Source: Macrostomum lignano (taxonomy: Eukaryota). From it: 64,000 nucleotides of DNA. The first letter of the stretch is position 1. Each line of letters begins with the position of its first letter. The DNA is taken from positions 124,001-188,000 of the forward strand of contig NIVC01002158.1 of assembly GCA_002269645.1 (NCBI GenBank), in the 5' to 3' direction. This document shows, in pieces, positions 3,251 through 61,400 of this stretch. The position numbers and the translations under genes were made by a program. Under the pieces are notes generated by a model. The model had not been told where the DNA came from. It did no database searches and saw nothing but the letters and a program-made list of their open reading frames with translations.

Positions 3251-3779
3251 TCCCCTTTTTCTCTCCTCTCTTCTCATCTCCTCACCTCTCTCCTTTTCTC
3301 TCTCTCATCACCTTTTATCACCTCACCTCTCTCCTCTCCTCTCCTCTGGTCTCCTCACCTCCTCACCTCTCTCCTCTCCTCTCATCTCCCGTTTCCTCTC
3401 CATTCTCTTCTCCCTTCTCTCCTCTCCTTTTTTATCTCTCTTCTCGTCTACTCTCTTCTCCTTTACTTCTTCGCCTCTCCTTTCTCCTGCGCTCGTATCT
3501 TCTCTATCTATCCTCTCTCCCTATAGCCCGCAGTCATCAGGGACTCCTGGGCACGCGTTTCGCTTAGGGGGGGGGGGGCAGCGAGGCGGACCCAGAAGGG
3601 CAGTCATGCGCTGTTCTCAATCTGGCCCTTGAGGTAAATGTTTGCTGACCCCTGGACTAAAAGCACAACGCTTAGGCACATCAGATAAAAACTGTAGTGG
3701 AATGGGATTGAGAACAACATGAACTATTATATCAGCCGGTACCCAAAGCTTCCAAGACTAAGAAAAGCCAAAGCCGAAA

Positions 3780-42100: not shown

Positions 42101-45100
42101 GATCTGAGAGGCTGGTGGCCTAGCAACTGAGGATCTGGGAGGCTGTCCCAGAAATGAGGATCTGGGAGGCTATTGGTGCTACAGCAACAGAGTTAGTGCC
42201 TTTAATAAGTTCTTTTCTATAATTATACTCACAACATTTTTTGAATTTCACAGGTGATGGAGGAGGTGGAGAACGTCAGCCGGCAATACCAGCCCCTGGC
42301 CCAGAGCTGCTCAGCTATCTTCTTCACTCTGGAAGGACTCAGCCAGCTGCACTCACTGTACCACTACTCTCTGCAGTTCTTCCTGTCAATGTTTAACGCC
42401 GCTCTGCACACGCAGGACCTGTCTGGCCTGACGGAGCCTTCCAAACGACTGGAGGTCATCACCGGTGCGCTGTTCCGCGTCACCTTCACCCGGGTTGGCC
42501 GCGGCATGCTGCAGCAGGTGAGCTAGCAGTAGTAGTAGTAGTAGTAGTAGTAGTAGTTTTAGCAGTATCAGTAGTAGTAGTAGTAGTTTTAGCAGTATCA
42601 GTAGTAGTAGTAGTAGTTTTAGCAGTATCAGTAGTAGTAGTAGTAGTTTTAGCAGCATTAGTAGTAGTAGTAGTAGTTTTAGCAGCATCAGTAGTAGTAG
42701 TAGTAGTTTTAGCAGCATCAGTAGTAGTAGTAGTAGTTTTAGCAGTATCAGTAGTAGTAGTAGTAGTTTTAGCAGTATCAGTAGTAGTAGTAGTAGTTTT
42801 AGCAGTATCAGTAGTAGTAGTAGTAGTTTTAGCAGTATCAGTAGTAGTAGTAGTAGTTTTAGCAGTATCAGTAGTAGTAGTAGTAGTTTTAGCAGCATCA
42901 GTAGTAGTAGTAGTAGTTTTAGCAGCATCAGTAGTAGTAGTAGTAGTTTTAGCAGCATCAGTAGTAGTAGTAGTAGTTTTAGCAGTATCAGTAGTAGTAG
43001 TAGTTTTAGCAGTATCAGTAGTAGTAGTAGTAGTTTTAGCAGTATCAGTAGTAGTAGTAGTAGTTTTAGCAGTATCAGTAGTAGTAGTAGTTTTAGCATT
43101 ATCAGTAGTAGTAGTAGTAGTTTTAGCAGTATCAGTAGTAGTAGTAGTAGTTTTAGCAGTATCAGTAGTAGTAGTAGTAGTTTTAGCAGTATCAGTAGTA
43201 GTAGTAGTAGTTTTAGCAGTATCAGTAGTAGTAGTAGTTTTAGCAGTATCAGTAGTAGTAGTAGTAGTTTTAGCAGCATCAGTAGTAGTAGTAGTAGTTT
43301 TAGCAGCATCAGTAGTAGTAGTAGTAGTTTTAGCAGCATCAGTAGTAGTAGTAGTAGTTTTAGCAGTATCAGTAGTAGTAGTAGTTTTAGCAGTATCAGT
43401 AGTAGTAGTAGTAGTTTTAGCAGTATCAGTAGTAGTAGTAGTAGTTTTAGCAGTATCAGTAGTAGTAGTAGTTTTAGCAGTATCAGTAGTAGTAGTAGTT
43501 TTAGCAGTATCAGTAGTAGTAGTAGTAGTTTTAGCAGTATCAGTAGTAGTAGTAGTAGTTTTAGCAGTATCAGTAGTAGTAGTAGTAGTTTTAGCAGTAT
43601 CAGTAGTAGTAGTAGTTTTAGCATTATCAGTAGTAGTAGTAGTAGTAGTAGTACAATAGTAGCAGCAGTAACAGAGTATTAGTAGCAGAGCATACCGTGT
43701 TCAGCTATCAGCTCAATTGGCAGAACTCCTTCCCCTTTCGCTGGCAACTATTTATATATTAATCACCAAGTCATGATAAGTAGTAAAGAGCGAGCATGGT
43801 TTCACTCCCTCTCTCGCACAACCAGGACCAAATCTCCCTGGCGGTGCTGCTCGCCCGTATCTACCTGCGCTCTAGCAGCACTCCGTTCGATGCCGAGTTC
43901 CAGCACTTCCTCCGGTCCCAGATTGTCACCGGCGCCCAGGAGCTGGACACCGCCAAGGCGGCTAACAAACTGGCCGAGCTGGCCTGCTTCAAGAACCTGC
44001 CCGGTCTAGTGGCTAAGAATGACGAATTCTCAGCCTGGGTTAACCAGGTCAGCCCGGAGATCTCCGTGCCGAAACTCTGGCAGGCTCCGTCTGCTGCCGA
44101 GGAGGAGCGCGGCCAAGCCATCTACAGCCTGCTGCTTGTGCAGGCCTTCCGGCCAGATCGGCTGCTGGCTGCCGCACATCACTTCGTTGCCGCTCTGCTG
44201 TCCGAGGACTTCCTGCAGGTTTGGATTACGCTGAATTATAGCGTTTTCATTGATTGACACTCCACCATGTAGCAATACTTTTGTTTGACTTGAGTCTACG
44301 ACACTGGTATAATAGAGAAGCGACTAAAGCTCACGCGCAGTTGCGAGAGTCGTCTCTCACTGACTGACTCGATTGCGAAGCTATCACGCCTCAATCGTTA
44401 TAAAACAATCCGACTGACACTCAGTCGCCCCGGAGTCACCTGAGTCGCCCCTCACTCATTTGGGTCACAGTCTAAGATACTACTGAGCTGCAGTAGTGTG
44501 AGTAGCTAGTGTATTAAATGAGATTCCATGCAGTCCACAGACAGCTCCCAGTCAGCCTGCATTGTTAAATTGGCTGTCTGAGGCGTTCCCTAGCTGTGGC
44601 AGATAAAGCTTAAAGGAAGCTGGGCTGACTTTTTCTATGCTGCTCTGCGTATCACTGACCCCAGTGCGCCCTGCAGTACGCTGAGACAGCCACATGCACT
44701 GACTAATGCGACGCTATCACGCCTCAATCGTTATAGAACTATCCGATAGTCGCCGCAGAGTCGTTAGACCATTCCTTAGTCGTTAGACAGAGTTGGTTAA
44801 GTCGCATATGATCACTTGAGTCGCCTCAGAGTTTTGAGTCGCCTATGAGTCACTTGAGTCGCCTATGAGTCACTTGAGTCGCCTATGAGTCACTTGAGTC
44901 GCCTATGAGTCACTTGAGTCGCCTATGAGTCACTTGAGTCGCCTATGAGTCACTTGAGTCGCCCCAGAGTCACTTAAGTCGCCTCAGAGTCCCATCTTTC
45001 ATATTTATCCATAATTTTCTCCCCCAGAGCTGCCAAATCCTGGCCGGCGACTTGGCCAAATCCGTACTGGAGGAGGTGACCTCGGCCACTCCGCTGCTAA

Positions 45101-48100
45101 TCTGCTCACCGCCCGGCTACGACGCATCCGGCCGAGTTGAGGAGCTGGCCTCCGAGTGCGGAAAACAGCTCACTGGCATCGCCATCGGCTCCGCTGAAGG
45201 CTTTAGCGCGGCCGAGAAAGCCGTCAACTCCGGCGCCAAGACTGGCGGCTGGATCGCGCTCAAGAATGTACACCTGGCGCCGGCCTGGCTCGGCCAGCTG
45301 GAGAAACGCCTGCACACGCTGGCGCCGCATCCCAATTTCCGGCTGTTCCTCACCGCTGAGATCTCGCCTAAGCTGCCTACTAATATCATCCGCACCGCCA
45401 GGGTGTTCGTGTTCGAGCCGCCCGCTGGCCTGAAGGCGTCCCTGATGCGCACCCTCAGTGCCATACCGCCGCAGCGGATGTCCAAGGCACCCGCCGAGAG
45501 AAGTCGCCTGTACTTCCTGCTGGCCTGGTTCCACGCTGTTGTGCAGGTGAGTCGCTTTTGGTGTTTTTTCACTCTATCTGTTTCTTTGTTCTTCTGACTC
45601 TGACCACCTTGACCCACTGGATTCTGACTACCTGACCCACTGGACCCTGACCACCTGACCGAATGGACCCTGACCATCTGACCCACTGGACTCTGACCAC
45701 CTGACCCACTGGACTCTGACTACCGGACCCAATGGACCCTGACCACCTGACCGAATGGACCCTGACCACCTGACCCACTGGACTCTGACTACCGGACCCA
45801 ATGGACCCTGACCACCTGACCGAATGGACCCTGACCACCTGACCCACTGGACTCTGACTACCTGACCCAATAGACCCTGACTACCTGACCCACTGCACTC
45901 TGACCACATTGACCCATTGCACTCTGACCACCTTGACCCACATAAGTTAGCCCCCTTGACCCACGTAAGCTATCTCACCTTGACCCAGCAACTACGACAA
46001 CTTAAATCAATATCTATTCTAAAGCACCGACTTACAGTTTTACTATTAGCAGTAGTGTCATGAAAATGTTGAATTCGTTACAGCCCAATCTAAAAGAAGA
46101 TTTTGTTCCCGCCCTATCCAAACAGGAGCGCCTCCGCTACACTCCACTTGGCTGGGCCAAACGCTACGAGTTCAACGAGTCGGATTTGAAATGCGCCTGC
46201 GACACAATCGACACCTGGGTTGACGGAGCCGCCATGGGCCGCGCCAACCTGCCCCCAGACAAGATCCCGTGGGACGCGCTGCGCACCCTCATGTCGCAGT
46301 GCATCTACGGCGGCAAAATTGATAACGCCTTCGATGCCCGCCTGTTGCAGACGTTCCTTGAGTCTTTGTTCGACGCCGCTAGCTTTGACGGTGACAGGCC
46401 CATTGTAGAGCACGTCGACGGGGTCGAGGGCGGCCGCATCATGCCGCCTGAGGGCTCCAAGCGCAACGAGATTTTCGCCTGGATCAACAAGCTGCCAGAT
46501 ACGCAGACACCTTCCTGGCTTGGACTGCCGAATAATGCTGAGAAAGTGCTATTGAGGAACTTGGGTAAGCTGGCGTATGAGGTCTTTGTTTGTGATAGAG
46601 GCCTTGTTTGTACTAAATACCCATTAACGTGTTGTAGATCCCCGTACTCCCGTGTTCTAGACCCCCTTCCCCGTGCTCTAGCTCTTTTAGTTGTAATCTT
46701 GAAAAAAACAAAAGCTAGGCCACATTTTGCCCCTGGCCGGCACCGCGGCAGCTGCAGCTCCGCCCAGTGGCCGAGCGAGGCTTTCCTTCTGTGGCAGACG
46801 GTTGGCGGCCCTGTGCGGCATTTTTGCCTCAGAGACTCGCGGCCTGCGTGTCTGCGGCTGTCCGCTGCGGGGCTCACAGAGTCTCAGATACTACTGAGCT
46901 GCAGTAGTGTGAGTAGCTAGTGGGGCTGGGGCTCAGATCGCTCACAGAGTCTCAGATACTACTGAGCTGCAGTAGTGTGAGTAGCTAGTGGGGCTGGGGC
47001 TCAGATCGCTCACAGTCTCAGATACTACTGAGCTGCAGTAGTGTGAGTAGCTAGTGGGGCTGGGGCTCAGATCGCTCACAGTCTCAGATACTACTGAGCT
47101 GCAGTAGTGTGAGTAGCTAGTGGGGCTGGGGCTCAGATCGCTCACAGTCTCAGATACTACTGAGCTGCAGTAGTGTGAGTAGCTAGTGGGGCTGGGGCTC
47201 AGATCGCTCACAGAGTCTCATACTACTGAGCTGCAGTAATGTGAGTAACCAGTGCATAAAATTAGATTCAAATCCACAGACAGCTCCCAGTCAGCTTGCA
47301 TTGTTAAATTGGCTGTCTGAGGCGTTCCCTAGCTGTGGAAGATGAAGCTGAGGATGCTGGGCTGACTTTTTCTATGCTGCTCTGCGTATCACTGACCCCA
47401 GTGCGCTCTGCAGTACGCTGAGACAGCCACATTTTATTGTTTAATATGCGCCGTTTTTTGTATTTTAATTAAGTTTTGTCAAGATGCGCACTTACACTAA
47501 TTGAATTTTGTTCTGTACAGCGGCTCGACTTGTGAAAGACTTGCTGAAACTTGACCTGCTGGAGGAGGACGAGAAAGATGAAGGCGGTACAGTCACGCAT
47601 TCCTGTCTTATTCACAGTCTCTTTGGGATAATATGAAAACACCTTTATATATTTAAACTCAAGGTGGAGTTCGACTGGTTAAGCGGTTTTTCCTCTCATT
47701 ACCATATTTATACGATCCTATGTACTGTAGTTCTTAAGGAGTTTCATGGTAGGTAATGCAGTTTTTCTCCGTATGTTCCTTCTGAGGTGCGGTACAAGTT
47801 CTTTCGTCAAAAATCAATGCAATTGTACATACTATGTACACACTGGAAGGCAGTTTTTCCTCTGGTTTTAACATTGTTTTTCAAAAATTTGAATTCGCGC
47901 CAAAAAGTTTCTCAAGTAGTTTAACAAAAATTGTTTTAAATTTAAAACTTGATAAATCAATATTTGTTTTTTTCCTCTCTAAATAGCTATCACCTTTTTA
48001 TAATGTAAAACAAAAATCCAGACAGCGTAATTTTTGGCGCGAATTTGAATTACTGGTAAAAAAATTTGCGCCAATTTAAACTTTACTAACAAAAATAGTA

Positions 48101-49094
48101 AACCAAAAATCCATGTCAGTCTTGTGTTCTTCTTCCCCCTTTTAACTCAGGCCAAGAGATGCTGGGCAAGGTGATGCAGATGCAGCACGTTGAAGATGAC
48201 GAAGACCTGGTGGTCAGCGGTCGCCAGCGCACTATCAGCAACGCGGGCGACGCCAGGCCGGCCTGGATGCGGCAGCTGTGCAACCAGGCCAATGACTGGC
48301 TGGGCCAGCTGCCCAAGGATCTGCGCCGCATGGCCCGCACAGCCGAGAACATCAAGGATCCGCTGTTCCGCTGCTTCGAGCGCGAGGTCACCTCAGCTGC
48401 CAACCTGCTTGCCGCGGTGCGCAAAGATCTCAGCGAGGTGGCGGCAGTGTGCGCGGCGGAGCGCAAGCCGACAAATCATCACCGCAAGATGATGGCGGAC
48501 CTGCAGAAGAGCCTCATACCGGCTGGCTGGAAGAAGTACACAGTGCCAGCTGGGCTCACCGCCATCCAGTGGGTTGCCGACTTTGCCGAGCGGGTCCGGC
48601 AGATGGCTCGAATCTCTGATCTGGTTGCCAAGGGCGGCATTGAGTCGCTTCGCTTGGCTCCCGTGTGGCTTGGCGGCCTCTTCATGCCCGAGGCCTACAT
48701 CACCGCCACCAGGCAGACCGTTGCCCAGAGCAACCGCTGGGCCCTGGAGGAGCTCACTTTGGACGTGAAGGTCCGTCCAGCTGCTGACGGCCCGCCGCCC
48801 GATGCCAGCACCTTCGTGGTGCACGGCTTGCGTCTCATGGGAGCCGAGTGCGCCGACAACAAGCTCCGCCTGGTGAACAGCATCAGCAGCGAGCTGGCCC
48901 GCACCGAGATCTGCTGGGTGAGGCACGAGGCCTACAAGAAGCCGCCGCCGGAGAGCTCAGTCAGTCTGCCTGTGTACCTGAACTCCACCAGGGCTCAGCT
49001 GCTGTTCACCCTCACCTTCCCCACTGAGGAGCCGAACACGGCTACGCAGTTCTTTGAGCGGGGCGTGGCCGTCACCGCCTCTGTGCTGGGCTGA
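5032..49094 (+). CDS. DYNC1H1: Cytoplasmic dynein-1 heavy chain, complete spliced gene (~4623 aa)
   Basis: Exons read by hand, all GT-AG with consistent phases: 5032-5275, 7655-7742, 7833-8006, 10218-10473, 13021-13680, 14369-21448, 22242-22565, 23025-23456, 24053-24623, [25398-25593 or 25681-25876], 26439-27012, 40558-40905, 41491-41856, 42254-42517, 43826-44218, 45028-45546, 46126-46564, 48151-49094. Sum 13,872 nt. P-loops [24 protein letters not shown] and GVSGAGKT are present; the N-terminal tail ([25 protein letters not shown]) is of the cytoplasmic dynein-1 type. Confidence 0.98.
8123..8421. mobile_element. hAT-type MITE (299 bp)
   Basis: 14-bp perfect TIR CATACATGCGCAAC / GTTGCGCATGTATG. 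8-bp TSD GACCGTTA at 8115-8122 and 8422-8429. Confidence 0.85.
8505..8965. repeat. 42-bp minisatellite (GGTCACATGACTGTCACATTTGAGG core)
   Basis: Visible tandem units in intron 3. Confidence 0.9.
10541..12035. mobile_element. Possible non-autonomous DNA element enclosing the 21-bp array
   Basis: Near-inverted ends AGCGGGGGCGTC and GACGCCCCTGCT; no TSD found. Confidence 0.35.
10630..11930. repeat. 21-bp minisatellite (GCAGGCACTCATTTTAGCGCC)
   Basis: About 60 units in intron 4. Confidence 0.97.
14369..21448 (+). CDS. DYNC1H1: Dynein heavy chain exon 6 (7080 nt): tail, linker, AAA1-AAA3
   Basis: Acceptor ctctag|GTTATC and donor GACCAG|gtgggc bound the 2363-aa ORF, which contains three Walker A motifs. 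Confidence 0.97.
21570..22160. repeat. ~21-22-bp minisatellite with palindromic GTCACGTGA core
   Basis: Tandem units with higher-order repetition in intron 6. Confidence 0.92.
22615..22925. repeat. 29-bp minisatellite (GGGAATTACTATATAGTGCTGATGGATCA)
   Basis: About 10 units in intron 7. Confidence 0.95.
23530..23980. repeat. 38-bp then 22-bp minisatellite (CAGATCCCCATTTCAGTG core)
   Basis: Unit length switches mid-array in intron 8. Confidence 0.93.
24700..25190. repeat. Degenerate GT-rich repeat (TTTGGGA/TGTGGGA)
   Basis: Intron 9. Confidence 0.85.
25398..25593 (+). CDS. DYNC1H1: Dynein alternative exon 10A, microtubule-binding domain variant A
   Basis: tatctag|CT...CTCAG|gtgagt, 196 nt, phase 1 in and phase 2 out. 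Encodes [66 protein letters not shown]. Confidence 0.92.
25681..25876 (+). CDS. DYNC1H1: Dynein alternative exon 10B, microtubule-binding domain variant B (absent from the ORF track)
   Basis: tatccag|CC...ATGCC|gtaagt, 196 nt, phase 1 in and phase 2 out. Encodes [66 protein letters not shown], colinear with 10A. Confidence 0.88.
27050..27724. repeat. 29-bp minisatellite (GATCCCCATAGACTGGGCAGCTTCTCCCA), left part
   Basis: The array resumes at 40212-40345 after the transposon nest. Confidence 0.95.
28851..31760 (-). CDS. Transposon accessory protein, DUF4806-like (~653 aa, 5 exons)
   Basis: Exons 31760-31553, 31257-30262, 29956-29712, 29520-29349, 29191-28851. Phases are consistent, total 1962 nt. 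N-terminus [20 protein letters not shown] and C-terminal [13 protein letters not shown]...[16 protein letters not shown] resemble accessory ORFs of animal EnSpm elements. Confidence 0.72.
30330..30870 (-). repeat. 51-bp coding tandem repeat ([17 protein letters not shown]) in the transposon accessory gene
   Basis: About 10 near-identical in-frame units. Confidence 0.95.
32260..34596 (-). CDS. CMC/EnSpm-type DDE transposase (spliced)
   Basis: Main exon 34094-32260 is stop-free, with motifs [31 protein letters not shown] and FWGENF. Upstream phase-1 exon 34596-34369 ([13 protein letters not shown]). A further possible exon at 36505-36368; start codon not located. Confidence 0.88.
37572..39732 (-). 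CDS. Low-complexity spliced ORF remnant inside the outer element
   Basis: Phase-compatible exons 39732-39566, 39030-38969, then 38762-38518 or its duplicate 38281-37572 ((SRQRIK)n). No start codon or recognisable domain found. Confidence 0.35.
37596..38180. repeat. 18-bp minisatellite (CTCTGCCTCGACTTTATC)
   Basis: About 32 units; shorter second array at 38525-38660. Confidence 0.95.
38168..39005. repeat. ~481-bp direct duplication inside the outer element
   Basis: 38221 aaacataggtctcccatttc... recurs at 38702, including identical AT-rich intron sequence. Confidence 0.9.
40960..41395. repeat. 46-bp minisatellite (TTGACC-based)
   Basis: Intron 12. Confidence 0.92.
41875..42170. repeat. ~30-bp degenerate minisatellite (CCCAGCAACTGGGGATCTGAGAGGCTGG)
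   Basis: Intron 13. Confidence 0.85.
42525..43660. repeat. (AGT)n-based 27-30-bp minisatellite
   Basis: Intron 14. Confidence 0.96.
44535..44697 (+). ncRNA. H/ACA snoRNA-like family A, copy 1 (dynein intron 15)
   Basis: CCACAG/CTGTGG hairpin, pocket CAGCT + CGTTCCCTA, H box AGATAA, 3' hairpin, ACA+3 nt. Confidence 0.7.
44815..44990. repeat. 20-bp minisatellite (GAGTCGCCTATGAGTCACTT)
   Basis: Intron 15. Confidence 0.92.
45595..45965. repeat. ~20-bp CTGACC-based minisatellite
   Basis: Intron 16. Confidence 0.88.
46719..46881 (+). ncRNA. H/ACA snoRNA-like family B, copy 1
   Basis: GCCAC/GTGGC hairpin with pocket ATTTTGCC + CTTTCCTT; hinge AGACGG (imperfect H box); 3' hairpin GCCCTG...CGGGGC; ACA+3. 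Confidence 0.5.
46882..47250. repeat. 66/68-bp hairpin-forming tandem repeat between snoRNA-like B and A
   Basis: CTCAGATACTACTG-AGCTG-CAGTAGTGTGAG stem; about 5.5 units. Confidence 0.9.
47274..47434 (+). ncRNA. H/ACA snoRNA-like family A, copy 2 (dynein intron 17)
   Basis: Same fold; H box AGATGA; ACA. Confidence 0.7.
47521..47636 (+). CDS. Candidate alternative dynein exon at the start of the C-terminal cap (66-nt cassette, or terminal exon with stop at 47634-47636)
   Basis: ttctgtacag|CG acceptor in the phase 1 required after exon 17. Reads [22 protein letters not shown], resembling [20 protein letters not shown] at the start of exon 18. Weak donor G|gtacag at 47586; read-through gives [16 protein letters not shown]. 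Confidence 0.55.
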
Positions 49095-49884
49095 TTTTAA
49101 CTGACTAGTATGGATCACAATAATCATATTTATAACTCATCCTTATATATTAATAACAAAATACTAACTATTTAATCATAGATTCTTTAGCGCCATTTTC
49201 AAACCCAAAATTTCAAAATAATGGAAATTAAAAAAGCTGTTCGAAATTTTGTTTAAATTATACTCAAAATTTTATTTAACAAAAATCTATCAGCAATAAT
49301 CAGTTAATATAAATGAGATAGTATTAAACAAATTCGACTGCTTGATCCATTATTCTATTTATAATCAACTGTGTTGACCTATTTATTGCAATATTTATTA
49401 CTATATTTATTATCAATTTGGATATATTTATTTACCTACTAGTTTTGTTCGTTTGTGTTTTATTCTATCTAAGCACTCTCTCTAGAAGCGATGCTATTAA
49501 TCCCTCAATTTTTACGCTTATGGTCCTATTTCATAAACAGACAATTTATATTTAGATTAGACTACTATATCAAGCTACTTGAAGTAATATAGAACTGCAC
49601 CTGATTTTCTTGCGCGGTGTTGACTCGTATTTTTTATTATTCTCTCAAACTGAAAATACTTTATTGGAATTTTGGTTCTTTACTCTTACTACTTTACTAT
49701 ATTAATATCTATTGTCTACTGTTATTCAGGCTTTAACTAATAAAACTGTCATCAGTTTCTAGTAGATCTTCATCGCGGTGATTAGCGTCATTCAAGTCTG
49801 CGTTTGTCTTCAATATTATAATTCATTTTCTTGTATCTTGCACCTTAGCTAGCTGCATAGGTAGACTGAAACAACTAGAGCATA

Positions 49885-50043
49885 CCACGGACAGCTCCCA
49901 GTCAGCTTAATTTGCAAATAGCTGTCTGAGGCGTTCCCTAGCTGTGGCAGATGAAGCTGAGGAAGCTGGGCTGACTTTTTCTATGCTGCTCTGCGTCTCA
50001 CTGACCCCAGTGCGCCCTGCAGTACGCTGAGACAGCCACATGC
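49885..50043 (+). ncRNA. H/ACA snoRNA-like family A, copy 3 (intergenic)
   Basis: Same fold with a variant apical loop; AGATGA; ACA. Confidence 0.7.
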
Positions 50044-50279
50044 ACTCTAGTGTCTTCATATCAGTGTCCTAAAATCAAAAGTAATAAATATCATATCGTT
50101 ATGTTTAAGTAGGTTAAGCAAGCCTAATCGCGGTTAGTACGTAGTCAAATAGGGCCTTTTAATTTATGTGGCACCAACGATGGAATCGGTAGGCTTGCTG
50201 TAATTTTTTTATTCTACCGATATGTATAAAAAAATTAACCTAAAAGAATTACGGCTCTGTTTTTTAAATGATAATTTAA

Positions 50280-50441
50280 CCACAAACAGCTCCCAGTCAG
50301 CCTGCATTGTTAAATTGGCTCTCTGAGGCGTTCCCTAGCTGTGGCAGATGAAGCTTTAAGATGCTTGGCTGACTTTTTCTATGCTGCTCTGCGTATCACT
50401 GACCCCAGTGCGCCCTGCAGTACGCTGAGACAGCCACATGC
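50280..50441 (+). ncRNA. H/ACA snoRNA-like family A, copy 4 (intergenic)
   Basis: Same fold; AGATGA; ACA. Confidence 0.7.
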
Positions 50442-50626
50442 ACTTCTGTTTCTCACTACCAGTGCCCTAGAATCAAAGTAGTAATATCATATCGTTATTG
50501 TTTAAGTAGGTTAAGCAAGCTTAATCACGGTTAGTACGCAGTCAATTAGGGGCTTTTATTTTGTGTGGCACCAATGCTGTAATCAATAGCTTTCCTATGG
50601 TCTTTGTTTTTGCAAATCTCTTTTGT

Positions 50627-50790
50627 CCACAAACAGCTCCTAGTCAGCTTGTTAAATTCTCAAATAGCTGTCTGAGGCGTTCCCTAGCTGTGGCAGATGA
50701 AGCTGAGGATGCTGGGGCTGACTTTTTCTATGCTGCACTGCGTATCACTGACCCCAGTGCGCTCTGTAGTACGCTGAGACAGTCACATTC
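50627..50790 (+). ncRNA. H/ACA snoRNA-like family A, copy 5 (intergenic)
   Basis: Same fold; AGATGA; ACA. Confidence 0.7.
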
Positions 50791-50915
50791 AAATAAGACT
50801 ACTTTTATATTCTCAGTAGTATAAGTAGAGAATTAGTTTTTTTAAGCCGATATGTATCGAAAGTATATTTAACGAAGGGTATTTTACTACTAATATATTT
50901 ATGCTATCCAGCGCC

Positions 50916-51521
50916 ATGACTAAAGGCAGCAGCTCGGGTTCGCTTGCGGGAGGCGATGCTCAAAAGCAGAAGCAGCAACAGCAGCAGCCGGCCTGGCCCA
51001 TCGAGCAGGAGATGAACTTGTTCGTGGCACTCCGCGGCCACAAACCCGTAGGTGTTGACCGGCACTTCCAGATGCTGTACATCACCGAGAAGTTGAACGC
51101 TGCGCAGCGGGACCGCGGCCTCCCGCCGGTGTCCATCCGGTCCGTGTGGACCCTCCTGGACAGCCTGTACTCCATGCCGGCCCTGCACGACTCCGAGGTG
51201 CTGCCCTTCCCTAACAAGGACGTTGAATTTTCTCTGCCAATTGATTCGCCGGATTGGAAACCCGTGCTAGCCATGGACTTTCCAAGGGTGTTCGGCTTGT
51301 CCGCTGCCGGCTCCGCCCGCTCCGCGTCGCCTGCGGGCGCCCTCGCCGAGCCGTCGATTCAGCCGAGGAAGCGCGGCCGACCTCCCCGTGGCACTGCGTC
51401 GCCGCAGGCGGCCCCCTCTAGTCGAAGCCACTCACCGGCGCCCAGCAGCGACGCTGGCGACTCAGTGGCCGGTGGCAGCGCCGGCGGCAGCAGCCTGGCG
51501 TCTAAGAAAGCCAGGAGATGA
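50916..51521 (+). CDS. MRGBP: MRG/MORF4L-binding protein (Eaf7 family, NuA4/TIP60 subunit), intronless
   Basis: WPIEQEMNLFVALRGHKPVGVDRHFQMLYI...VWTLLDSLYSMPALHDSEVLPFPN matches the Eaf7/MRGBP domain. Start taken at ATG 50916 (an upstream in-frame ATG lies at 50901). Confidence 0.9.
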   Translation: MTKGSSSGSLAGGDAQKQKQQQQQPAWPIEQEMNLFVALRGHKPVGVDRHFQMLYITEKLNAAQRDRGLPPVSIRSVWTLLDSLYSMPALHDSEVLPFPNKDVEFSLPIDSPDWKPVLAMDFPRVFGLSAAGSARSASPAGALAEPSIQPRKRGRPPRGTASPQAAPSSRSHSPAPSSDAGDSVAGGSAGGSSLASKKARR

Positions 51522-51739
51522 GCTGCCTGATTGTGTCAGCTGTGCATTTCCAGCTTAAATGCATTCTGTCCAGTTTACTGTTGCTGTGTGCACAGTTTAA
51601 CATTCTTATATTGCTCTGTACTGAGCGTTTTATCAGTTATAATTACTGTATAGTTACTATCAACTGCAATTAAAGTAAATAAACGGGTTTCTATTTTTAT
51701 AGGCAATTCTTTGCTTGTTGATTGATCGATTTGAACAAG

Positions 51740-52525
51740 TCAGCAAGATAGCAATTCCCCCTTCACATCAGCAAGATAGTAATTCCCCCTTCACGTCAGC
51801 AAGGTAGCAATTCCCCCAAATCAGCAAGATAGCAATTCCCCCTTCACATCAGCAAGATAGTAATTCCCCCTTCACGTCAGCAAGGTAGCAATTCCCCCAG
51901 ATCAGCAAGATAGCAATTCACCCTTCACGTCAGCAAGATAGCAATTCCCTCTTCACGTCAGCAAGGTAGCAATTCCCCCAGATCAGCAAGATAGCAATTC
52001 ACCCTTCACATCAGCAAGATAGTAATTCCCCCTTCACGTCAGCAAGGTAGCAATTCCCCCAGATCAGCAAGATAGCAATTCACCCTTCACATCAGCAAGA
52101 TAGTAATTCCCCCTTCACGTCAGCAAGGTAGCAATTCCCCCAGATCAGCAAGATAGCAATTCACCCTTCACGTCAGCAAGATAGCAATTCCCCTTCACAT
52201 CAGCACGATAGCAATTCACCCTTCACGTCAGCAAGATAGCAATTCCCTCTTCACATCAGCACGATAGCAATTCACCCTTCACGTCAGCAAGATAGCAATT
52301 CCCTCTTCACATCAGCAAGATAGCAATTCCCCCTTCACATCAGCACGATAGCAATTCCCCCTTCACATCAGCAAGATAGCAATTCCCCCTTCACATCAGC
52401 AAGATGGCAATTCCCCCTTCACATCAGCACGATAGCAATTCCCCCAGATCAGCACGATAGCAATTCCCCCTTCACATCAGCAAGATAGCAATTCCCCCTT
52501 CACATCAGCACGATAGCAATTCCAT
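51740..52525. repeat. ~28-bp minisatellite (CAGCAAGATAGCAATTCCCCCTTCACAT)
   Basis: Intergenic tandem array. Confidence 0.94.
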
Positions 52526-52734
52526 TCAGTCTTGATCAGCGAACTTACCGCAACAATTTAAGTGACATTTTGTTAATCACTCCAGTGCATTCTGGTCACA
52601 TGCCTGCATCTGGCAGGTGTATTGTTGCAATAGTAAATAAAAAATCGCTAACATTAGCCTCGAGTGGCAGCTGAATTATAATTGTTCTGCTATCGCCGCT
52701 TCAAGGTACGCATAGTGAAACAGTGTTTAGAAAT

Positions 52735-55345
52735 GACTCCATAAACACATTTGATTAGAGCCCTGAAATAAACACTTTTAGTTAAAGTCCCATAAACACA
52801 CTTGATAAAAGCCCCATAAACACACTTAAGTAAAGCCCCATGCACACATTTGATTAAAGCCACAAACACACTTGAGTAAAGCCACATAAACACACTTGAT
52901 TAAAGCCCCATGCACACATTTGATTAAAGCCACATAAACACACTTGAGTAAAGCCCCATGCACACATTTGATTAAAGCCACAAACACACTTGAGTAAAGC
53001 CACATAAACACACTTGAGTAAAGCCCCATGCACACATTTGATTAAAGCCACAAACACACTTGAGTAAAGCCACATAAACACACTTGATTAAAGCCCCATG
53101 CACACATTTGATTAAAGCCACAAACACACTTGATTAAAGCCACATAAACACACTTGAGTAAAGCCCCATGCACACATTTGATTAAAGCCACAAACACACT
53201 TGAGTAAAGCCACATGCACACACTTGAGTAAAGCCCCATGCACACATTTGATTAAGGCCACATAAACACACTTGAGTAAAGCCCCATGCACACATTTGAT
53301 TAAAGCCACAAACACACTTGAGTAAAGCCCCATGCACACATTTGATTAAAGCCACATAAACACACTTGAGTAAAGCCCCATGCACACATTTGATTAAAGC
53401 CACATAAACACACTTGAGTAAAGCCCATGCACACATTTGATTAAAGCCACATAAACACACTTGAGTAAAGCCCCATGCACACATTTGATTAAAGCCACAT
53501 AAACACACTTGAGTAAAGCCCCATGCACACATTTGATTAAAGCCACATAAACACACTTGAGTAAAGCCCCATGCACACATTTGATTAAAGCCACATAAAC
53601 ACACTTGAGTAAAGCCCCATGCACACATTTGATTAAAGCCACATAAACACACTTGAGTAAAGCCCCATGCACACATTTGATTAAAGCCACATAAACACAC
53701 TTGATTAAAGCCCCATGCACACATTTGATTAAAGCCACATAAACACACTTGAGTAAAGCCCCATGCACACATTTGATTAAAGCCACATAAACACACTTGA
53801 GTAAAGCCCCATGCACACATTTGATTAAAGCCACATAAACACACTTGAGTAAAGCCCCATGCACACATTTGATTAAAGCCACATAAACACACTTGAGTAA
53901 AGCCCCATGCACACATTTGATTAAAGCCACATAAACACACTTGAGTAAAGCCCCATGCACACATTTGATTAAAGCCACATAAACACACTTGAGTAAAGCC
54001 CCATGCACACATTTGATTAAAGCCACATAAACACACTTGAGTAAAGCCCCATGCACACATTTGATTAAAGCCACATAAACACACTTGAGTAAAGCCCCAT
54101 GCACACATTTGATTAAAGCCACATAAACACACTTGAGTAAAGCCCCATGCACACATTTGATTAAAGCCACATAAACACACTTGATTAAAGCCCCATGCAC
54201 ACATTTGATTAAAGCCACATAAACACATTTGATTAAAGCCACATAAACACACTTGAGTAAAGCCACATAAACACACTTGAGTAAAGCCCCATGCACACAT
54301 TTGATTAAAGCCACATAAACACACTTGAGTAAAGCCCCATGCACACATTTGATTAAAGCCACATAAACACACTTGAGTAAAGCCCCATGCACACATTTGA
54401 TTAAAGCCACATAAACACACTTGAGTAAAGCCCCATGCACACATTTGATTAAAGCCACATAAACACACTTGAGTAAAGCCCCATGCACACATTTGATTAA
54501 AGCCACATAAACACACTTGAGTAAAGCCCCATGCACACATTTGATTAAAGCCACATAAACACACTTGAGTAAAGCCCCATGCACACATTTGATTAAAGCC
54601 ACATAAACACACTTGAGTAAAGCCCCATGCACACATTTGATTAAAGCCACATAAACACACTTGAGTAAAGCCCCATGCACACATTTGATTAAAGCCACAT
54701 AAACACACTTGAGTAAAGCCCCATGCACACATTTGATTAAAGCCACATAAACACACTTGAGTAAAGCCCCATGCACACATTTGATTAAAGCCACATAAAC
54801 ACACTTGAGTAAAGCCCCATGCACACATTTGATTAAAGCCACATAAACACACTTGAGTAAAGCCCCATGCACACATTTGATTAAAGCCACATAAACACAC
54901 TTGAGTAAAGCCCCATGCACACATTTGATTAAAGCCACATAAACACACTTGAGTAAAGCCCCATGCACACATTTGATTAAAGCCACATAAACACACTTGA
55001 GTAAAGCCACATAAACACACTTGATTAAAGCCCCATGCACACATTTGATTAAAGCCACATAAACACACTTGAGTAAAGCCCCATGCACACATTTGATTAA
55101 AGCCACATAAACACACTTGAGTAAAGCCACATAAACACACTTGATTAAAGCCCCATGCACACATTTGATTAAAGCCACATAAACACACTTGAGTAAAGCC
55201 CCATAAACACATTTGATTATACCCCCATAAACACATTTGATTATACCCCCATAAACACATTTAATTATCCCCCATAAACACATTTAATTATACCCCCATG
55301 AACACATTTAATTATACCCCCATAAACACATTTGATTATACCTCC
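52735..55345. repeat. 48-bp (2x24) satellite, ~2.6 kb
   Basis: AAAGCCCCATGCACACATTTGATT + AAAGCCACATAAACACACTTGAGT dimer. Confidence 0.97.
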
Positions 55346-55491
55346 ATAAACACATTTGATTCTCAAATTCCATCAAGAAAGTCGAACTCGTTACTTTTTG
55401 CTTTAATAAAAAATGCATCGTATTTCCGTGACGCACTACTTGCAGTAGGTCTGTATGTGAATTGCAATTTCGCTTCCCGCAGCCAGCCAGC

Positions 55492-58400
55492 ATGTCTGCC
55501 CGCACCCGCCTGCCGCCGCACCTGGTGCCAGCCAGACAGAAAACTACCAGACAGCCGCAGTTTATTCGACAGCAACAACTGGCCTCGCTTGAGTCTATGC
55601 TCAATAGAACTGCGCTCTCTGTTCAGCGGGCCACGCATCAAAACATTCTGGGTGAGCCAGCAGCTGGAAACCCATGTACTTGTTAGTAGCAGTTGCCCCT
55701 GGTTACAGAATTAGGAACAGTTGCAGTACAGCATGATGAGCCACATTTTGCCCCTGGCCGGCACCGCGGCAGCAGCAGCTCCGCCCAGTGGCCGAGCGAG
55801 GCTTTCCTTCTGTGGCAGACGGTTGGTGGCCCTGTGCGGCATTTTTGCCTCAGAGACTCGCTGCCTGCGTGTCTGCGGCTGTCCGCTGCAGGGCTCACAG
55901 AGTCTCAGATAACTAGTGTTTTAAATGCGATTCAAATCCACAGACAGCTCCCAGTCAGCTTGGATTGTTAAATTGGCTGTCTGAGGCGTTCCCTAGCTGT
56001 GGCAGATGAAGCTTTAGGATGCTGGGGCTGACTTTTTCTATGCTGCTCTGCGTATCACTGACCCCAGTGCGCTCTGTAGTACGCTGAGACAGCCACATGC
56101 ACTCTTGTTTCTCACTATAGTACCAGGGCCCTAGAAATTGATAGAAATAATAGAAATAATATCATATCCTTGTTTATGTAGGTTAAGCAAACCTAATCGC
56201 GGTTAGTAGGCCAGTCAAATAAGAACTTGTATTTTGTGTCACACCAGCGCTGGAATTGCTAGAAAAAAAATTATTTTTATTCATTTATTCTGCCGATATG
56301 TATCGAAAATGTAACTAAAATTAATTACAGCTCTTTGTTTTTGCAATCGTGAATTATTTGTCCACAGACAGCTCCTAGTCAGCTTGGAAAATTCTCAAAT
56401 AGCTGTCTGAGGCGTTCCCTAGCTGTGGCAGATGAAGCTGAAGAAGCTGGGCTGACTTTTTCTATGCTGCACTGCGTATCACTGACTCCAGTGCGCCCTG
56501 CAGTACGCTGAGACAGTCACATGCACTTTTGGATCAGTTTTCTGTGCATTCTTTTAAGCAATGGTCGACTTTGAAATCCGGTTTATTTAGTTAAGACCAG
56601 ACTAACGATATGTATCGAAATTATGCGTTATTCTAGAAGCAATGTTTAGTCAAGAGTAGTTTAAAGTCTATTTAAAATCCCAAGTCAATGCAGCTGAATC
56701 GCTCATCATCCTCATCCTCGCCTGCTCAGAGCTGGGCGATCGCTACGTGTCAGCCGATGACCGCCTGCCAGCAGTGGCGGAGCCAGTCGCCGGCTCCCGT
56801 GTAGACATTGACAGCCTGTTGCAGCAGGCCCAGGCCAAATTCGACCGGGACTTGCGCAACGCTCGCGAATCTCTGCGCAAAGAATTGGAGGCTGAACGGG
56901 AACGAGCCCTGGCTGAGCAGAAGGCCGAGTTTGAGAAGCACCTGGATCAGGTGAGCCGACTTAGTGAGATATTTTCCTAGTGTGGTTATAGTAGAAAAAT
57001 ATGGTGTGTGTAATGAAATTTTTGACGGGTACCTTATTACTTGTTTTGCGATTGAAAACTGGGGTATGTAAGCAATATTTTCTATTACTACTACTGAAAA
57101 GTCAGTGTGGCCTTCGGGTCCTTTGAAACTTTACAATAGCCTCTCTCTTCCCTCTTATCTCTTCTCGAATCCCATCTCTCGCCTCTCCTCTATTTTCATC
57201 TGGCTCTTGATGTGAAGATGTTTGCCTGACCCCTGCATTAAGGAACATACTGCAGGCATACCAATCCACAGACAGCTCCTAGTCAGCTTCTCAAATAGCT
57301 GTTCTGAGGCGTTCCCTAGCTGTGGCAGATGAAGCTTAAGGATGCTGGGCTGACTTTTTCTATGCTGCTCTGCGTATCACTGACCCCAGTGCGCTCTGCA
57401 GTACGCTGAGACAGCCACATGTACTCTTGTTTCTCACTACCAGTGCCCTAGAATCAAAGTAGTAATATCATATCGTTATTGTTTAAGTAGGTTAAGCAAG
57501 CTTAATCGCGGTTAGTACGCAGTCAATTAGGGGCTTTTATTTTGTGTGGCACCAATGCTGTAATCAATAGCTTTCCTAGGGTCTTTGTTTTTGCAAATAT
57601 TTTTGTCCACAGACAGCTCCTAGTCAGCTTGTTAAATTCTCAAATAGCTGTCTGAGGCGTTCCCTAGCTGTGGTAGATGAAGCTTTAGGATGCTGGGCTG
57701 ACTTTTTCTATGCTGCTCTGCGTATCACTGACCCCAGTGCGCCCTGCAGTACGCTGAGACAGCCACATGTAATAATATATAAATATATATATAATTGTAA
57801 TTTTCATACAAGTTAAGCAGCGCTGGGCGCGGTTAGTACTCAGATAAATAGCTATATTTATTAAATCTGTTAGTTAAATTATCAGATTCTGGAAGCAGCT
57901 CAGCGTTAAAAGTGTCTTCTGTCTTTCGCACAAACGATCCCCTAGTTCGATTCCATTCGTTTGGAGCTTGTGAATGTGCATTGCAACTGATTCAAATCAT
58001 ACTTGTCATCTTTTTGTACATGCCTGACGATCAGAGAGTCAAAGTGCCGCTGTACACCCTCTGTGAGCGTGTGTGTCGGTGCTGCCTTCGCACAGTATTG
58101 GCGTGCTTCTATTTGCTGTACTGTACATAGGGTTGTAGCCTAGTGGTTTGAGCGTCGGACTTACGACTTAAAGGTCGGGGGTTCGTTTCCCAATCCCACT
58201 AGGAACTGTTTGTGTCATTGAGCAAGACACTTAACTCTCTGCATTGTTTCACTTCACCCACCCAGCTGTAAAATGGGTGCCAGCATTAGCTGGGATAATT
58301 GAGGGTGTCTGTGGCGACACCCCCCTCAGTCCTATCCATGTACCTATGTACCTGTACCCAATGAACCGGAGAAGGTGCAATTTCTATTTCCCACTCCTGT

Positions 58401-61400
58401 CCCCAGGTGTGCTCCCTGCGCGATAAAGCCGAGGACATGGCCAAGCGGGATCTTCGGCGCGCCTGCGAGCTAGACAAACAGGCCGCCCTGAGACAGCAGC
58501 GCGAGTACCTGGACACTGTGCGGCTGGATGCCATTGAGCGGGCCAGGATGGAGGAGCGGCATCTGGCCAGACAGAACTCCGCTGCGGATCGGGCGGAGGC
58601 TGTGCAGAAGGCGCTCGATGAAGCTGAGGTGAGCGGCTGCTGGTGTGTGTCACTGTGTCCATCCTGGTACGGTATCCCTGTGTCCGTCTGTGGCATCTTT
58701 GTGTCCATCGGTGACATCCCTGTGTCCGTCCGTGACATCTCTGTGTCCATCTGTGGCATCCCTGTGTCCATTCTGGCATCCCTGTGTCCATTCTGGCATC
58801 CCTGTGTCCATTCTGGCATCCCTGTGTCCATTCTGACATCCCTGTGTCCATCTGTGGCATCCCTGTGTCCATTCTGGCATCCCTGTGTCCATTCTGGCAT
58901 CCCTGTGTCCATTCTGACATCCCTGTGTCCGTCCGTGACATCTCTGTGTCCATCTGTGGCATTCCTGTGTCCATCGGTGACATCCCTGTGTCCGTCCGTG
59001 ACATCTCTGTGTCCATCTGTGGCATTCCTGTGTCCATCGGTGACATCCATGTGTCCATCGATGACATCTGTGTCCACCCTGACATCCTTGTGTCCACCTG
59101 TGGCATCCCTTTGTCCACCTTAACATTTTAATATCTATCGTGGCCCATAGGTTTTGGTTGTGACTGATGATTTCTTTTTTAATATTCTGTTAGTCAGTCC
59201 ACAAACAGCTCCCAGTCAGCTTGCATTGTTAAATTGGCTGTCTGAGGCGTTCCCTAACTGTGGCAGATGAAGCTGTGGATGCTGGGCTGACTTTTTCTAT
59301 GCTGCTCTGCGTATCACAGACCCCAGTGCGCCCTGCAGTACGCTGAGACAGCCACATTACAGTGCAATTATTGAATATCTTGCATAAATTATCGCTATGT
59401 GTTAAAGCAGATTAAGCTAACTGGTCGTGGTTAGTACGCTAGCTATTTAAAGAGCCTTGTAGTGGAGCAGTGTTATTCACGTTACACCTAATAGCACACG
59501 TTTTAGTGCTATGACAACATGATCAATAACCTTATTTACTCTGCCGATATGTATCGAAAATCCAGTAAAAAGCTTTTCTCGATTTAAAAATTTACCCAGT
59601 CCACAGACAGCTCTCTGTCAGCTTCAACCCTCAATTCTCTGATAGCTTTCTGAGGTGTTCTCTATGTGTGGCAGATAAAGCAAGAGAAGCAACGCCCCAC
59701 TATGCTGCTCTGCGTTCTCCCCTCCCTCCTGTTCATTGCGCAATCTGCCATTACGGGAAGACATGTACAGTAAAATTTAATTGTTTTTTGCACTTGCTTT
59801 AACCCTCAGTTAGCTGGTGTATTGGGATCAGAAATAAAAACAGCTTCTGTTGAAAATTCATTACCATCTGTGTCCCTAGCATCTCCCTGTCTCCCCAGCA
59901 TCTCCCTGCCTCCCCAGCATCTCCCTGCCTCTCCATCATCTCCTTGCCTCCCCAGCATCTCCCTGTCTACACAGCATCTCCCTGTCTACCCAGCATCTCC
60001 CTGTCTACCCAGCATCTCACTGCCTCCCCAGCATCTCCCTGTCTACCCAGCATCTCCCTGCCTCCTCATTATCTCCCTGTCTCCCTAGCATCTCCCTGCC
60101 TCCCCATCATCTCACAGCTTCACCATCCACGCCACCCAGGTGGCCTTCGAGCGTCGCGAGCAGCACACGGTGGACAAGACCAAGAAGGAGTGTCGACAGC
60201 TGTTCAACGAAGAGCTGACAGCCATCAGGAAGCGGCATCGTGAAGAAGTTGAGTCCTGGATGATAAAGTGAGAAGCTGGAGTTTTTCTGTTTATCGATAT
60301 GAGTATATTGTGATATGATGTAATGGGCCACATTTTGCCCCTGGCCGGCACCGCGGCAGCAGCAGCTCCGCCCAGTGGCCGAGCGAGGCTTTCCTTCTGT
60401 GGCAGACGGTTGGTGGCCCTGTGCGGCATTTTTGCCTCAGAGACTCGCTGCCTGCGTGTCTGCGGCTGTCCGCTGCGGGGCTCACAGAGTCTCAGATACT
60501 ACTGAGCTGCAGTAGTGTGAGTAGCTAGTGGGGCTGGGGCTCAGATCGCTCACAGTCTCAGATACTACTGAGCTGCAGTAGTGTGAGTAGCTAGTGGGGC
60601 TGGGGCTAGGGCTCAAATCGCTCACAGTCTCAGATACTACTGAGCTGCAGTAGTGTGAGTAGCTAGTGGGGCTGGGGCTCAGATCGCTCACAGTCTCAGA
60701 TACTACTGAGCTGCAGTAGTGTGAGTAGCTAGTGGGGCTGGGGCTCAGATCGCTCACAGAGTCTCAGATACTACTGAGCTGCAGTAGTGTGAGTAGCTAG
60801 TGGGGCTGGGGCTCAGATCGCTCACAGAGTCTCAGATACTACTGAGCTGCAGTAGTGTGAGTAGCTAGTGGGGCTGGGGCTCAGATCGCTCACAGTCTCA
60901 GATACTACTGAGCTGCAGTAGTGTGAGTAGCTAGTGTATTGAATGAGATTCCATGCAGTCCACAGACAGCTCCCAGTCAGCCTGCATTGTTAAATTGGCT
61001 GTCTGAGGCGTTCCCTAGCTGTGGCAGATGAAGCTGAGGATGCTGGGCTGACTTTTTCTATGCTGCTCTGCGTATCACTGACCCCAGTGCGCCCTGCAGT
61101 ACGCTGAGACAGCCACATGCACTCTTGTGTGCCAATCTTTCTCTAACCGTTCAGTTTTCAACTTATGATATAAATCGGCCTTCAAAACGCGCCCCGCCCG
61201 CAGGTACAAAGACCTGTACAAAAACTTTGAGCGCCTGTTGGACTCGAGCCGCAACGTGGAGGGCGAATTCCAGAGCCTGCAGACGGACTACAAGCGGTTC
61301 CTGGACTACTCTGACGGCCACTTTCACTCTGACTACATGATGAAGCTCAAGCAGGCCTGTCTGGATGCTGCATCGGACATTGGCCGGTCGCTGGCTCCGT

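Follow-up and report, generated by a model that had tools for sequence, protein, structure and literature searches.

Eleven intact copies of a probable box H/ACA snoRNA gene, predicted to target the peptidyl-transferase centre, at one locus of the flatworm Macrostomum lignano

What kind of sequence recurs a dozen times within a few neighbouring genes of a repeat-rich animal genome: a gene, a mobile element or a relic of unstable DNA? This question is raised by a unit of about 160 nucleotides (nt) in a 64,000-nt stretch of the Macrostomum lignano genome (assembly GCA_002269645.1, contig NIVC01002158.1, positions 124,001 to 188,000 of the forward strand), hereafter the window, in whose own coordinates all positions are given. 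The evidence presented below leads us to assign a probability of roughly 0.8 to the reading that the units are paralogous genes for one M. lignano box H/ACA small nucleolar RNA (snoRNA), which would guide the modification of a uridine in helix 90 (H90) of large-subunit (LSU) ribosomal RNA (rRNA), and that the family has grown by duplication at the DNA level. The family is genuine but, as a product of tandem duplication among snoRNA genes, a fairly ordinary one, and it does not represent a novel class of mobile element.

A profile of the copies was run with nhmmer against the whole window and returned 12 matches, all of them on the plus strand within 44528-61130 and none elsewhere, the copies being confined to 16.6 kb and the remaining 47 kb of the window lacking any. 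E-values ranged from 1e-59 to 1e-65 for 11 copies and reached 2.5e-19 for the match at 59596-59769 (copy c11; copies are numbered c1 to c12 as in Table 1). The initial annotation of this DNA had counted 12 plus-strand copies between 44535 and 61120; the range is exact and the number equals that of the profile matches, but c11 is degenerate, which leaves 11 intact genes and one old pseudogene. With limits taken from CCACAG to ACA plus 3 nt, the intact units measure 157-164 nt each. The 9-mer CGTTCCCTA occurs exactly 11 times, on the plus strand between 44584 and 61017 and each time inside an intact unit; a one-mismatch match at 51205 belongs to the coding sequence of an unrelated gene. In c11 the 5' hairpin is recognisable and carries stem mismatches, the guide reads TGTTCTCTA, equivalent to two C-to-U changes, and the 3' hairpin and the ACA are gone.

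The minimum-free-energy fold of the unit comprises a 5' hairpin, a hinge with C-AGAUGA, a mini-hairpin, a 3' hairpin and ACA, in agreement with the order of hairpin, H box, small hairpin, hairpin and ACA initially proposed. In the 5' hairpin, an internal loop separates a 6-bp lower stem (CCACAG/CUGUGG) from an upper stem of 10 bp that is interrupted; the loop has ACAGCU as its 5' strand and CGUUCCCUAG as its 3' strand, each of which adjoins the upper stem. The hinge holds the extra mini-hairpin, of 3-5 bp, which is atypical for box H/ACA RNAs. The 3' hairpin has an internal loop of its own, whose pocket stands 13 nt before the ACA (i.e. at distance 14, canonical), and the ACA follows immediately after the 3' stem. 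The H box reads AGAUGA in the intact window copies other than c1, which has AGAUAA.

Two further loci of the same assembly, L123 and L124, share 91-96% identity with the window and have the same gene order (dynein, MRGBP, FAM184), the window locus itself being L122 (contig NIVC01002158.1, 100% identical over 45483-64000). They contain 13 and 10 intact copies, respectively, which together with the 11 of the window make 34. Over these 34 intact copies the H box is AGAUGA, AGAUAA or AGACGA, every one of which conforms to ANANNA in the hinge between two hairpins, and the ACA is invariant and directly 3' of the 3' stem in 34/34.

The strands of the 5' pocket, CGUUCCCUA and CAGCU, are antisense to 5'-UAGGGAACG-UG-AGCUG-3' of LSU rRNA, with which they form 9+5 Watson-Crick pairs and leave the UG of the target unpaired at the base of the upper stem, the geometry required of an H/ACA guide. 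A 40-mer with the target sequence was present in one contig of a viral collection and in at least 120 metagenome contigs, and 14 complete ribosomal DNA (rDNA) units, running from small subunit (SSU) to LSU and eukaryotic, were extracted from those loci. Sites with at least 12 of the 14 pocket positions paired numbered exactly one per unit, always the H90 site, so that the exact pairing with conserved LSU rRNA noted at the outset also proved unique in 14/14 rDNA units. When the two pocket strands were shuffled, 0 of 2000 shuffles gave a fully paired site in all 14 units and 2 of 2000 did so in at least 7 units. An exact 23-mer of the guide region had no matches in the metagenome and viral collections, and therefore no homologues from other organisms were obtained.

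The paired site lies 78 nt 5' of the sarcin-ricin loop motif and its U is followed by G and A (AACG-U-GAGCUG), a spacing and context that agree with U2944 and A2946 in H90. Yeast U2944, in H90, precedes the H95 crosslinking site by fewer than 100 nt and has the methylated A2946 nearby; mapping with the carbodiimide CMC showed that it is pseudouridylated via the 5' hairpin of snR37, and it corresponds to human U4521, assigned to SNORA10 (PMC13015370). Under the older numbering 28S-4491, the human residue has been assigned to SNORA10 and, via a highly conserved element, to SNORA63 (PMC6984369). The equivalence of the residues rests on our own alignment of yeast and Escherichia coli numbering (E. 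coli 2575 + 369), which together with these two papers upholds the target first proposed (yeast U2944 of snR37, human U4491 of SNORA10). The pocket is thus predicted to select the LSU H90 uridine equivalent to yeast 25S U2944 and human 28S U4491/4521.

Variation among the copies is unevenly distributed. Every pair of snoRNA bodies in the window is 87-97% identical (mean 91.6%), and their 150-nt flanks, save for a few recently duplicated pairs, are about 50% identical, compared to 48.6% for random 150-mers. Among the 11 intact window copies, variable columns amount to 12/16 in the apical loop and 6/15 in the hinge mini-hairpin, to 1/6 in the H box, 1/34 in the pocket and 0/3 in the ACA, confirming that changes concentrate in loops. 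The compensatory exchange AGCC/GGCT versus AGCT/AGCT described in the initial annotation is real (C-G in 3, U-G in 3 and U-A in 4 window copies), but it is the sole double-sided change, accompanied by several further wobble-compatible transitions, and covariation is not significant in the 11 window copies (103 of 500 shuffles). It becomes so only with the paralogous loci: in the 34-copy alignment, where CGTTCCCTA and ACA are invariant, four pairs show double-sided changes (a number reached by 3 of 500 shuffles), 0 of 500 shuffles reach the covariation score or the count of changed cells, and six slid controls contain no double-sided change.

Rates of change were compared over 14 positional pairs of copies between loci, with only substitutions counted and the body divided into functional classes. 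With the flanks as reference (214/6873, 3.1%), guide nucleotides had changed at 0/196 sites (0%; not tested alone), guide plus boxes at 2/322 (0.6%, p = 0.006 vs flank), which is about five times slower, and guide, boxes and 3' pocket together at 5/574 (0.87%, p = 0.0008 vs flank). Loops, hinge and tail had changed at 34/480 sites (7.1%, p = 3e-5), faster than the flanks. The degenerate c11 evolves at the flank rate and is shared, with the same decay, by all three loci. Frozen guide and boxes, loops that are tolerated and exchanged and a dead copy that drifts make up the pattern that a functional guide RNA family should show, and one that would be hard to get by homogenisation alone.

Several observations nevertheless weigh against a functional snoRNA family. 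Between loci, the rate in stems, taken as one class, is not significantly below that of the flanks (19/795, 2.4% vs 3.1%), and whole bodies and flanks are equally divergent (5.5% vs 5.7%) in a crude comparison in which some best matches are non-orthologous and loop subtypes differ; part of the similarity among bodies may consequently be due to gene conversion or recency and not to selection. The distance from the upper stem of the 5' pocket to the H box, initially given as 17 nt and read as such from sequence and fold, is one above the canonical 14-16. The fold of the unit is no stabler than that of shuffled sequence (z ~ -1), so that thermodynamics alone argues neither way. The annotated introns are shared by c6 and c7, by c8 and c9 and by c10 and c11, and two snoRNAs per intron depart from the vertebrate rule. 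Finally, Rfam, to which the initial annotation had looked for a check, returned no H/ACA family for the whole window at the gathering score, for 44-62 kb at E<=10 or for a single unit with lax filters, a negative to be read with the proviso that the existence of Rfam models for SNORA10, SNORA63 and snR37 was not checked.

The equal rates of body and flank and the lack of significant constraint on stems are what would be seen if the repeats were non-functional relics of satellite DNA or segmental duplication, H/ACA-like by chance and similar through recent duplication and gene conversion, and the region, filled with minisatellites and clearly unstable, would suit such an origin. Relics would, however, have to account for a perfect 14-bp bipartite match, in the correct geometry, to a universally conserved and known modification site, which no shuffle equalled, as well as for the slow guide and boxes and for the covariation. 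Loops faster than flanks alongside frozen guides are the opposite of uniform homogenisation, and the one copy that has lost its structure decays at the neutral rate. Taken together, these data make the relic explanation decidedly improbable, and favour a functional family.

How did the copies multiply? The initial annotation had envisaged a snoRNA gene spreading under structural selection as a locally mobile or duplicating unit, reminiscent of retroposons. Its duplicating, selected part stands; the mobile part does not. A snoRNA-derived element, retroposon or other copy-and-paste unit, inserting locally into introns would explain why most copies have sharp homology edges with unrelated flanks on both sides, and why they sit in sense orientation in introns of unrelated neighbouring genes, as mammalian snoRNA retroposons (snoRTs) often do (PMC1687206). 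Against such an element, the 40 nt downstream of the 11 intact copies contain no A-rich tail (longest A run only 2-4 nt), and k-mers common to the 40 nt before and the 60 nt after a copy have a maximum length of 0-7 nt, which falls inside the null distribution for target-site duplications. All copies also keep to 16.6 kb and to one strand of the window, and recent duplicates bring their flanks along. Self-comparison of the window identified four such shared segments: 50280-50788 with 57266-57768 (c4+c5 vs c8+c9, two snoRNAs; 511 bp, 93.5%), 49885-50445 with 55938-56528 (82%), 46718-47432 with 60326-61118 (a 715-bp cassette, 94-96.5%) and 44465-44700 with 60890-61123 (236 bp, 97%). Shared flanks and the lack of tails and target-site duplications point to tandem or segmental duplication of DNA plus unequal recombination, not to retroposition.

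Differences in copy number among the paralogous loci likewise look like unequal crossing-over. The last dynein intron contains two copies in L123 and in L124 and one, c2, in the window; c2 combines the type A loop of the first with the ACATTT tail of the second, and has the appearance of a recombination product of two neighbouring copies, such as unequal crossing-over would yield. L124 is without the c6-c7 pair, and FAM184 intron 2 of L123 holds an additional copy. Of the two loop types, A tends to alternate with B, suggesting that an A-B pair existed ancestrally and was later duplicated as a unit. Copy c12 is a mosaic, with a near flank like that of c1 and a far flank like that of c2, and its positional homologues in L123 and L124 bear a different loop type, indicating gene conversion or recombination. 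With such evidence, a mobile element is a very improbable source of the copies, and duplication of DNA remains our preferred account of their growth. The block of dynein, MRGBP and FAM184 genes is present in at least three copies in the assembly, which fits the recent genome duplication that has been reported for M. lignano; snoRNA copy number differs among the three.

A further question concerns the 3' hairpin. Its pocket strands, ACUUUUUCUA and CGCUGAGA, form a well-shaped, invariant pocket, and between loci they match the functional guide in their constancy (3 substitutions in 252 sites). No recurrent site with at least 9 contiguous pairs was found for this pocket in 121 rDNA loci (among the matches listed) and the 14 complete units, and 46 of 2000 shuffled pockets beat the real one in the target search. 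A relaxed scan proposed 18S AAUAGCG-UA-UAUUAAAG, which was rejected as a poor site with two internal mismatches. The 3' pocket is therefore an orphan with respect to conserved rRNA, and the hairpin may serve either as an orphan guide or chiefly in structure and assembly.

An invariant pocket that lacks a conserved rRNA target is also what would be seen if the units encoded a genuine H/ACA ribonucleoprotein whose main role is not, or not only, the H90 pseudouridine, acting instead as a scaffold or chaperone of pre-60S particles or on a non-rRNA target via the 3' pocket, with copy number as dosage. Precedents exist, since snR37, which guides modification of the equivalent uridine, also acts as a scaffold, a separate role of its 3' domain (PMC13015370), and the H90 site of vertebrates is guided redundantly (PMC6984369). 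The flatworm RNA is, however, of canonical size and has no extra branches like those of snR37, and the invariance of the pocket may merely reflect a short time span. We regard a different main role as improbable and retain guidance of the H90 uridine as the function best in keeping with the data.

If so, each copy would be transcribed within the pre-mRNA of its same-strand host (the dynein gene, the region upstream of MRGBP/Eaf7 or the FAM184-domain gene), and exonucleases would trim the excised intron down to the RNA, which would assemble with dyskerin, Nop10, Nhp2 and Gar1. With its 5' pocket paired to LSU H90, the RNA would direct the isomerisation of the unpaired U, a residue of the A-site region of the peptidyl-transferase centre, to pseudouridine; UAGGGAACGUGAGCUG is expected in M. 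lignano 28S rRNA. In this minisatellite-rich region the family has expanded, and continues to turn over, through DNA-level duplication, both tandem and segmental, through unequal crossing-over and probably through gene conversion, with selection keeping guide and boxes constant while loops drift and get exchanged.

Table 1. Positions of the snoRNA copies, their hosts and associated repeats in the window.
Feature	Position	Strand	Location, type or evidence
c1, type A apical loop	44535-44697	+	Cytoplasmic dynein heavy chain intron; nhmmer E=3.9e-63
c2, type A	47274-47434	+	Last dynein intron (~46570-48145)
c3	49885-50043	+	Spacer between dynein stop (49094) and MRGBP/Eaf7 start (50901)
c4, type A	50280-50441	+	Dynein-MRGBP spacer; A-B pair with c5
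c5, type B loop	50627-50790	+	110 nt 5' of MRGBP/Eaf7 ATG
c6, type A	55938-56100	+	FAM184-domain gene intron 1
c7, type B	56362-56524	+	FAM184-domain gene intron 1, with c6
c8, short loop	57266-57422	+	FAM184-domain gene intron 2
c9, type B	57607-57770	+	FAM184-domain gene intron 2, with c8
c10, type A	59199-59359	+	FAM184-domain gene intron 3
c11, degenerate copy (pseudogene)	59601 to ~59770	+	FAM184-domain gene intron 3
c12, type A	60960-61120	+	FAM184-domain gene intron 4, 84 nt 5' of 3' splice site
Cytoplasmic dynein heavy chain, host of c1 and c2	12958-49094	+	Pfam DHC_N1, Dynein_heavy, AAA_lid_11, Dynein_C; tblastn exon map; NCBI gene call in L122/L123
MRGBP/Eaf7, single exon	50901-51521	+	Pfam Eaf7; animal MRGBP homologues; NCBI gene call of 205 aa
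FAM184-domain gene (PAA60382.1), host of c6-c12	55483-61618	+	Annotated exons; Macrostomum lignano match
PAA60382.1 exons	55483-55650, ~56727-56962, 58407-58628, 60141-60266, 61205-61618		
GC-rich element, copy 1	46719-46893	+	Upstream of c2
GC-rich element, copy 2	55740-55915	+	Directly upstream of c6
GC-rich element, copy 3	60327-60501	+	Upstream of c12
66-nt minisatellite, 5.7 copies	46880-47254	+	Between GC-rich element and c2; part of the 715-bp segment
66-nt minisatellite, 6.7 copies	60488-60936	+	Between GC-rich element and c12

Pfam domains, tblastn and annotated exons confirmed that two genes carry copies in their introns and that the other copies are intergenic, all of them in sense orientation and inside or beside expressed protein-coding genes (Table 1). 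Copies c3-c5 occupy the 1.8-kb spacer from the dynein stop to the MRGBP start. The look-up of the exact product of the 206-aa Eaf7 open reading frame (ORF) found no gene on record, probably because the NCBI call is one residue shorter. A coiled-coil protein assembled from the downstream ORFs is 98% identical to the M. lignano FAM184-domain protein, and all four introns of PAA60382.1 carry copies, at most two per intron. We considered whether mini-exons might restore one snoRNA per intron, because the arrangement polypyrimidine-CAG / TGCCCTAGAATCAAA / GTAGTA follows c3, c4 and c8 and looks like a mini-exon; since the arrangement is absent after c6 and does not appear in the annotated transcript, this is retained as no more than a weak idea. 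The spacers at 50044-50279, 50442-50626, 56101-56361 and 57423-57606 share conserved blocks including GGTTAAGCAAGCCTAATCGCGGTTAGTACG...GGCACCAA, and a palindromic CGATATGTATCGAAA motif recurs after c3, c5, c6 and c7.

Copies c2, c6 and c12 have an additional repeat upstream. A GC-rich element of 176 nt is found three times in the window, with 97-99% identity among its copies, and again at positions 2331, 10255 and 15370 of L123 and 2697 and 14805 of L124; these eight copies vary at 7 of about 172 columns. On the plus strand it folds into two hairpins, with GCCACA at their start and ACA-GAG at their end. In the first hairpin, the strands of the internal loop (UUUGCC and CUUUCCUU) stand 15 nt from the H-box position and pair 8+6 with LSU AAGGGAAG-UC-GGCAAA, a sequence found in 11 of the 14 rDNA units; this pairing was equalled by 4 of 3000 shuffles. 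Reading this element as an H/ACA RNA is opposed by its would-be H box, AGACGG, which breaks ANANNA, by a second hairpin without a clear pocket and by the predicted target, the U of AAGGGAAG-U-CGGCAAA, which is not known to us as a pseudouridine of either yeast or human rRNA. The GC-rich element is put forward as a lead, a candidate second H/ACA-like RNA. The unit of the 66-nt minisatellite that separates it from c2 and c12 repeats the tail of the element, and there is one partial unit 5' of c1 (44466-44511) and none 5' of c6. It is conceivable, though in our estimation unlikely, that a cassette of GC-rich H/ACA-like RNA, 66-nt minisatellite and type A snoRNA is being copied at the DNA level between introns of unrelated neighbouring genes, giving at least 34 intact copies at three homeologous loci that would be kept for the dose of the peptidyl-transferase guide or for a second, non-rRNA target of the orphan 3' pocket.

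Other features of the window were recorded along with its genes. In the dynein heavy chain gene, the exon at 14381-21472 is one uninterrupted stretch of 2363 codons, unusually long for an animal dynein gene, and the remainder of the gene is interrupted by introns filled with minisatellites of 19-30 nt period (e.g. 43000-43646 and 45596-45941). On the opposite strand of a large dynein intron (32260-34173, minus), a 637-aa ORF with a faint match to DUF4218 (transposase-associated) is probably a transposon insertion, and the 354-aa ORF at 30215-31279 (minus), with about 10 copies of a 19-aa repeat, is probably a repeat. Just 3' of the MRGBP/Eaf7 stop, 51740-52523 is a tandem repeat of 28 nt (81-nt higher-order) in about 29 copies, expanded in L123 and L124. 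The gap between MRGBP and FAM184 contains a tandem array (52782-55361; period 48, made of two 24-nt half-units; 54 copies, 94% matches), open in several minus-strand frames and almost certainly a minisatellite, at which the paralogous loci differ. In FAM184 intron 2, the stretch 58130-58400 has a tRNA-like head, GGGTTGTAGCCTAGTGG...GGTTCGTTTCCCAATCCCAC, and then a conserved-looking core (...GAGCAAGACACTTAAC...), and resembles a tRNA-derived short interspersed element; an ARAGORN scan of the window for tRNAs returned none, this stretch included, and a weak Rfam match here was dismissed as spurious. Finally, 324-3632 and 10605-11973 are low-complexity tandem arrays (SSPLL-like, 21-24-nt units) with several frames open on both strands, and are not genes.

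The significance of the family lies in annotation and in a small evolutionary case. No snoRNA annotation was found in the literature for M. lignano or other flatworms and no Rfam model matched, so that the units provide a usable first entry, a predicted guide, together with the genes that probably host it, for a pseudouridine that ranks among the most conserved in the peptidyl-transferase centre. As a small natural experiment on the evolution of a multicopy snoRNA, the set of three paralogous loci displays frozen guides and boxes, exchange of loops, gain and loss of copies by unequal recombination and the decay of one copy, and they caution annotators of a very repeat-rich genome that such units are probably genes and not transposon debris. 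Knowledge of how H/ACA RNAs work is left unchanged, and no new mechanism is implied.

Among known systems, yeast snR37 is a single, independently transcribed gene. It resembles the flatworm RNA in its H90 target (LSU domain V), in having the guide in the 5' hairpin and in a 3' hairpin without a known rRNA target, and differs from it in its length of 386 nt, its internal branches, which bind Upa1-Upa2 and Rbp95, and a 3' hairpin that has no pocket (PMC13015370). The flatworm RNA is about 160 nt long, canonical and intronic, with an open, invariant 3' pocket and at least 11 copies, and no covariance-model similarity was found. Vertebrate SNORA10 and SNORA63 are likewise intronic H/ACA RNAs of similar size with antisense elements to 28S-4491 (4521) (PMC6984369), but they are single-copy, and SNORA10 also guides 18S-210 and SNORA63 also 28S-4390. 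The target that they share with the flatworm RNA may reflect either homology or convergence.

In its organisation, the flatworm family resembles the clusters of H/ACA isoforms of Drosophila. As summarised in the passage of PMC2780460 that cites Liang 2002 and Huang 2005, rice and Drosophila melanogaster have intronic clusters of multiple snoRNA isoforms that arose by tandem duplication, sometimes with more than one snoRNA per intron. By the usage that calls two or more sense-oriented snoRNAs in one host intron an intronic cluster, the annotated FAM184-domain gene contains such clusters. Unlike those of rice and Drosophila, the flatworm cluster repeats one guide specificity 11 times at one locus (34 over three) and extends over three adjacent unrelated protein-coding genes, not one host. 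The copy number per specificity, the three unrelated adjacent genes and the two snoRNAs per intron make it somewhat unusual. The defining marks of mammalian snoRTs, which are dispersed, are an A-rich tail and a target-site duplication (about 14 bp), and new sense copies in introns of other genes can be faithfully processed (PMC1687206). The flatworm copies, in contrast, are clustered, share flanks and are devoid of both defining features. SNORD115 and SNORD116 form arrays of dozens of near-identical tandem copies, each in an intron of a repeated unit, and are box C/D orphans with a non-coding, imprinted host, whereas the flatworm RNAs are of the box H/ACA class, have a clear predicted rRNA target and reside with protein-coding hosts.

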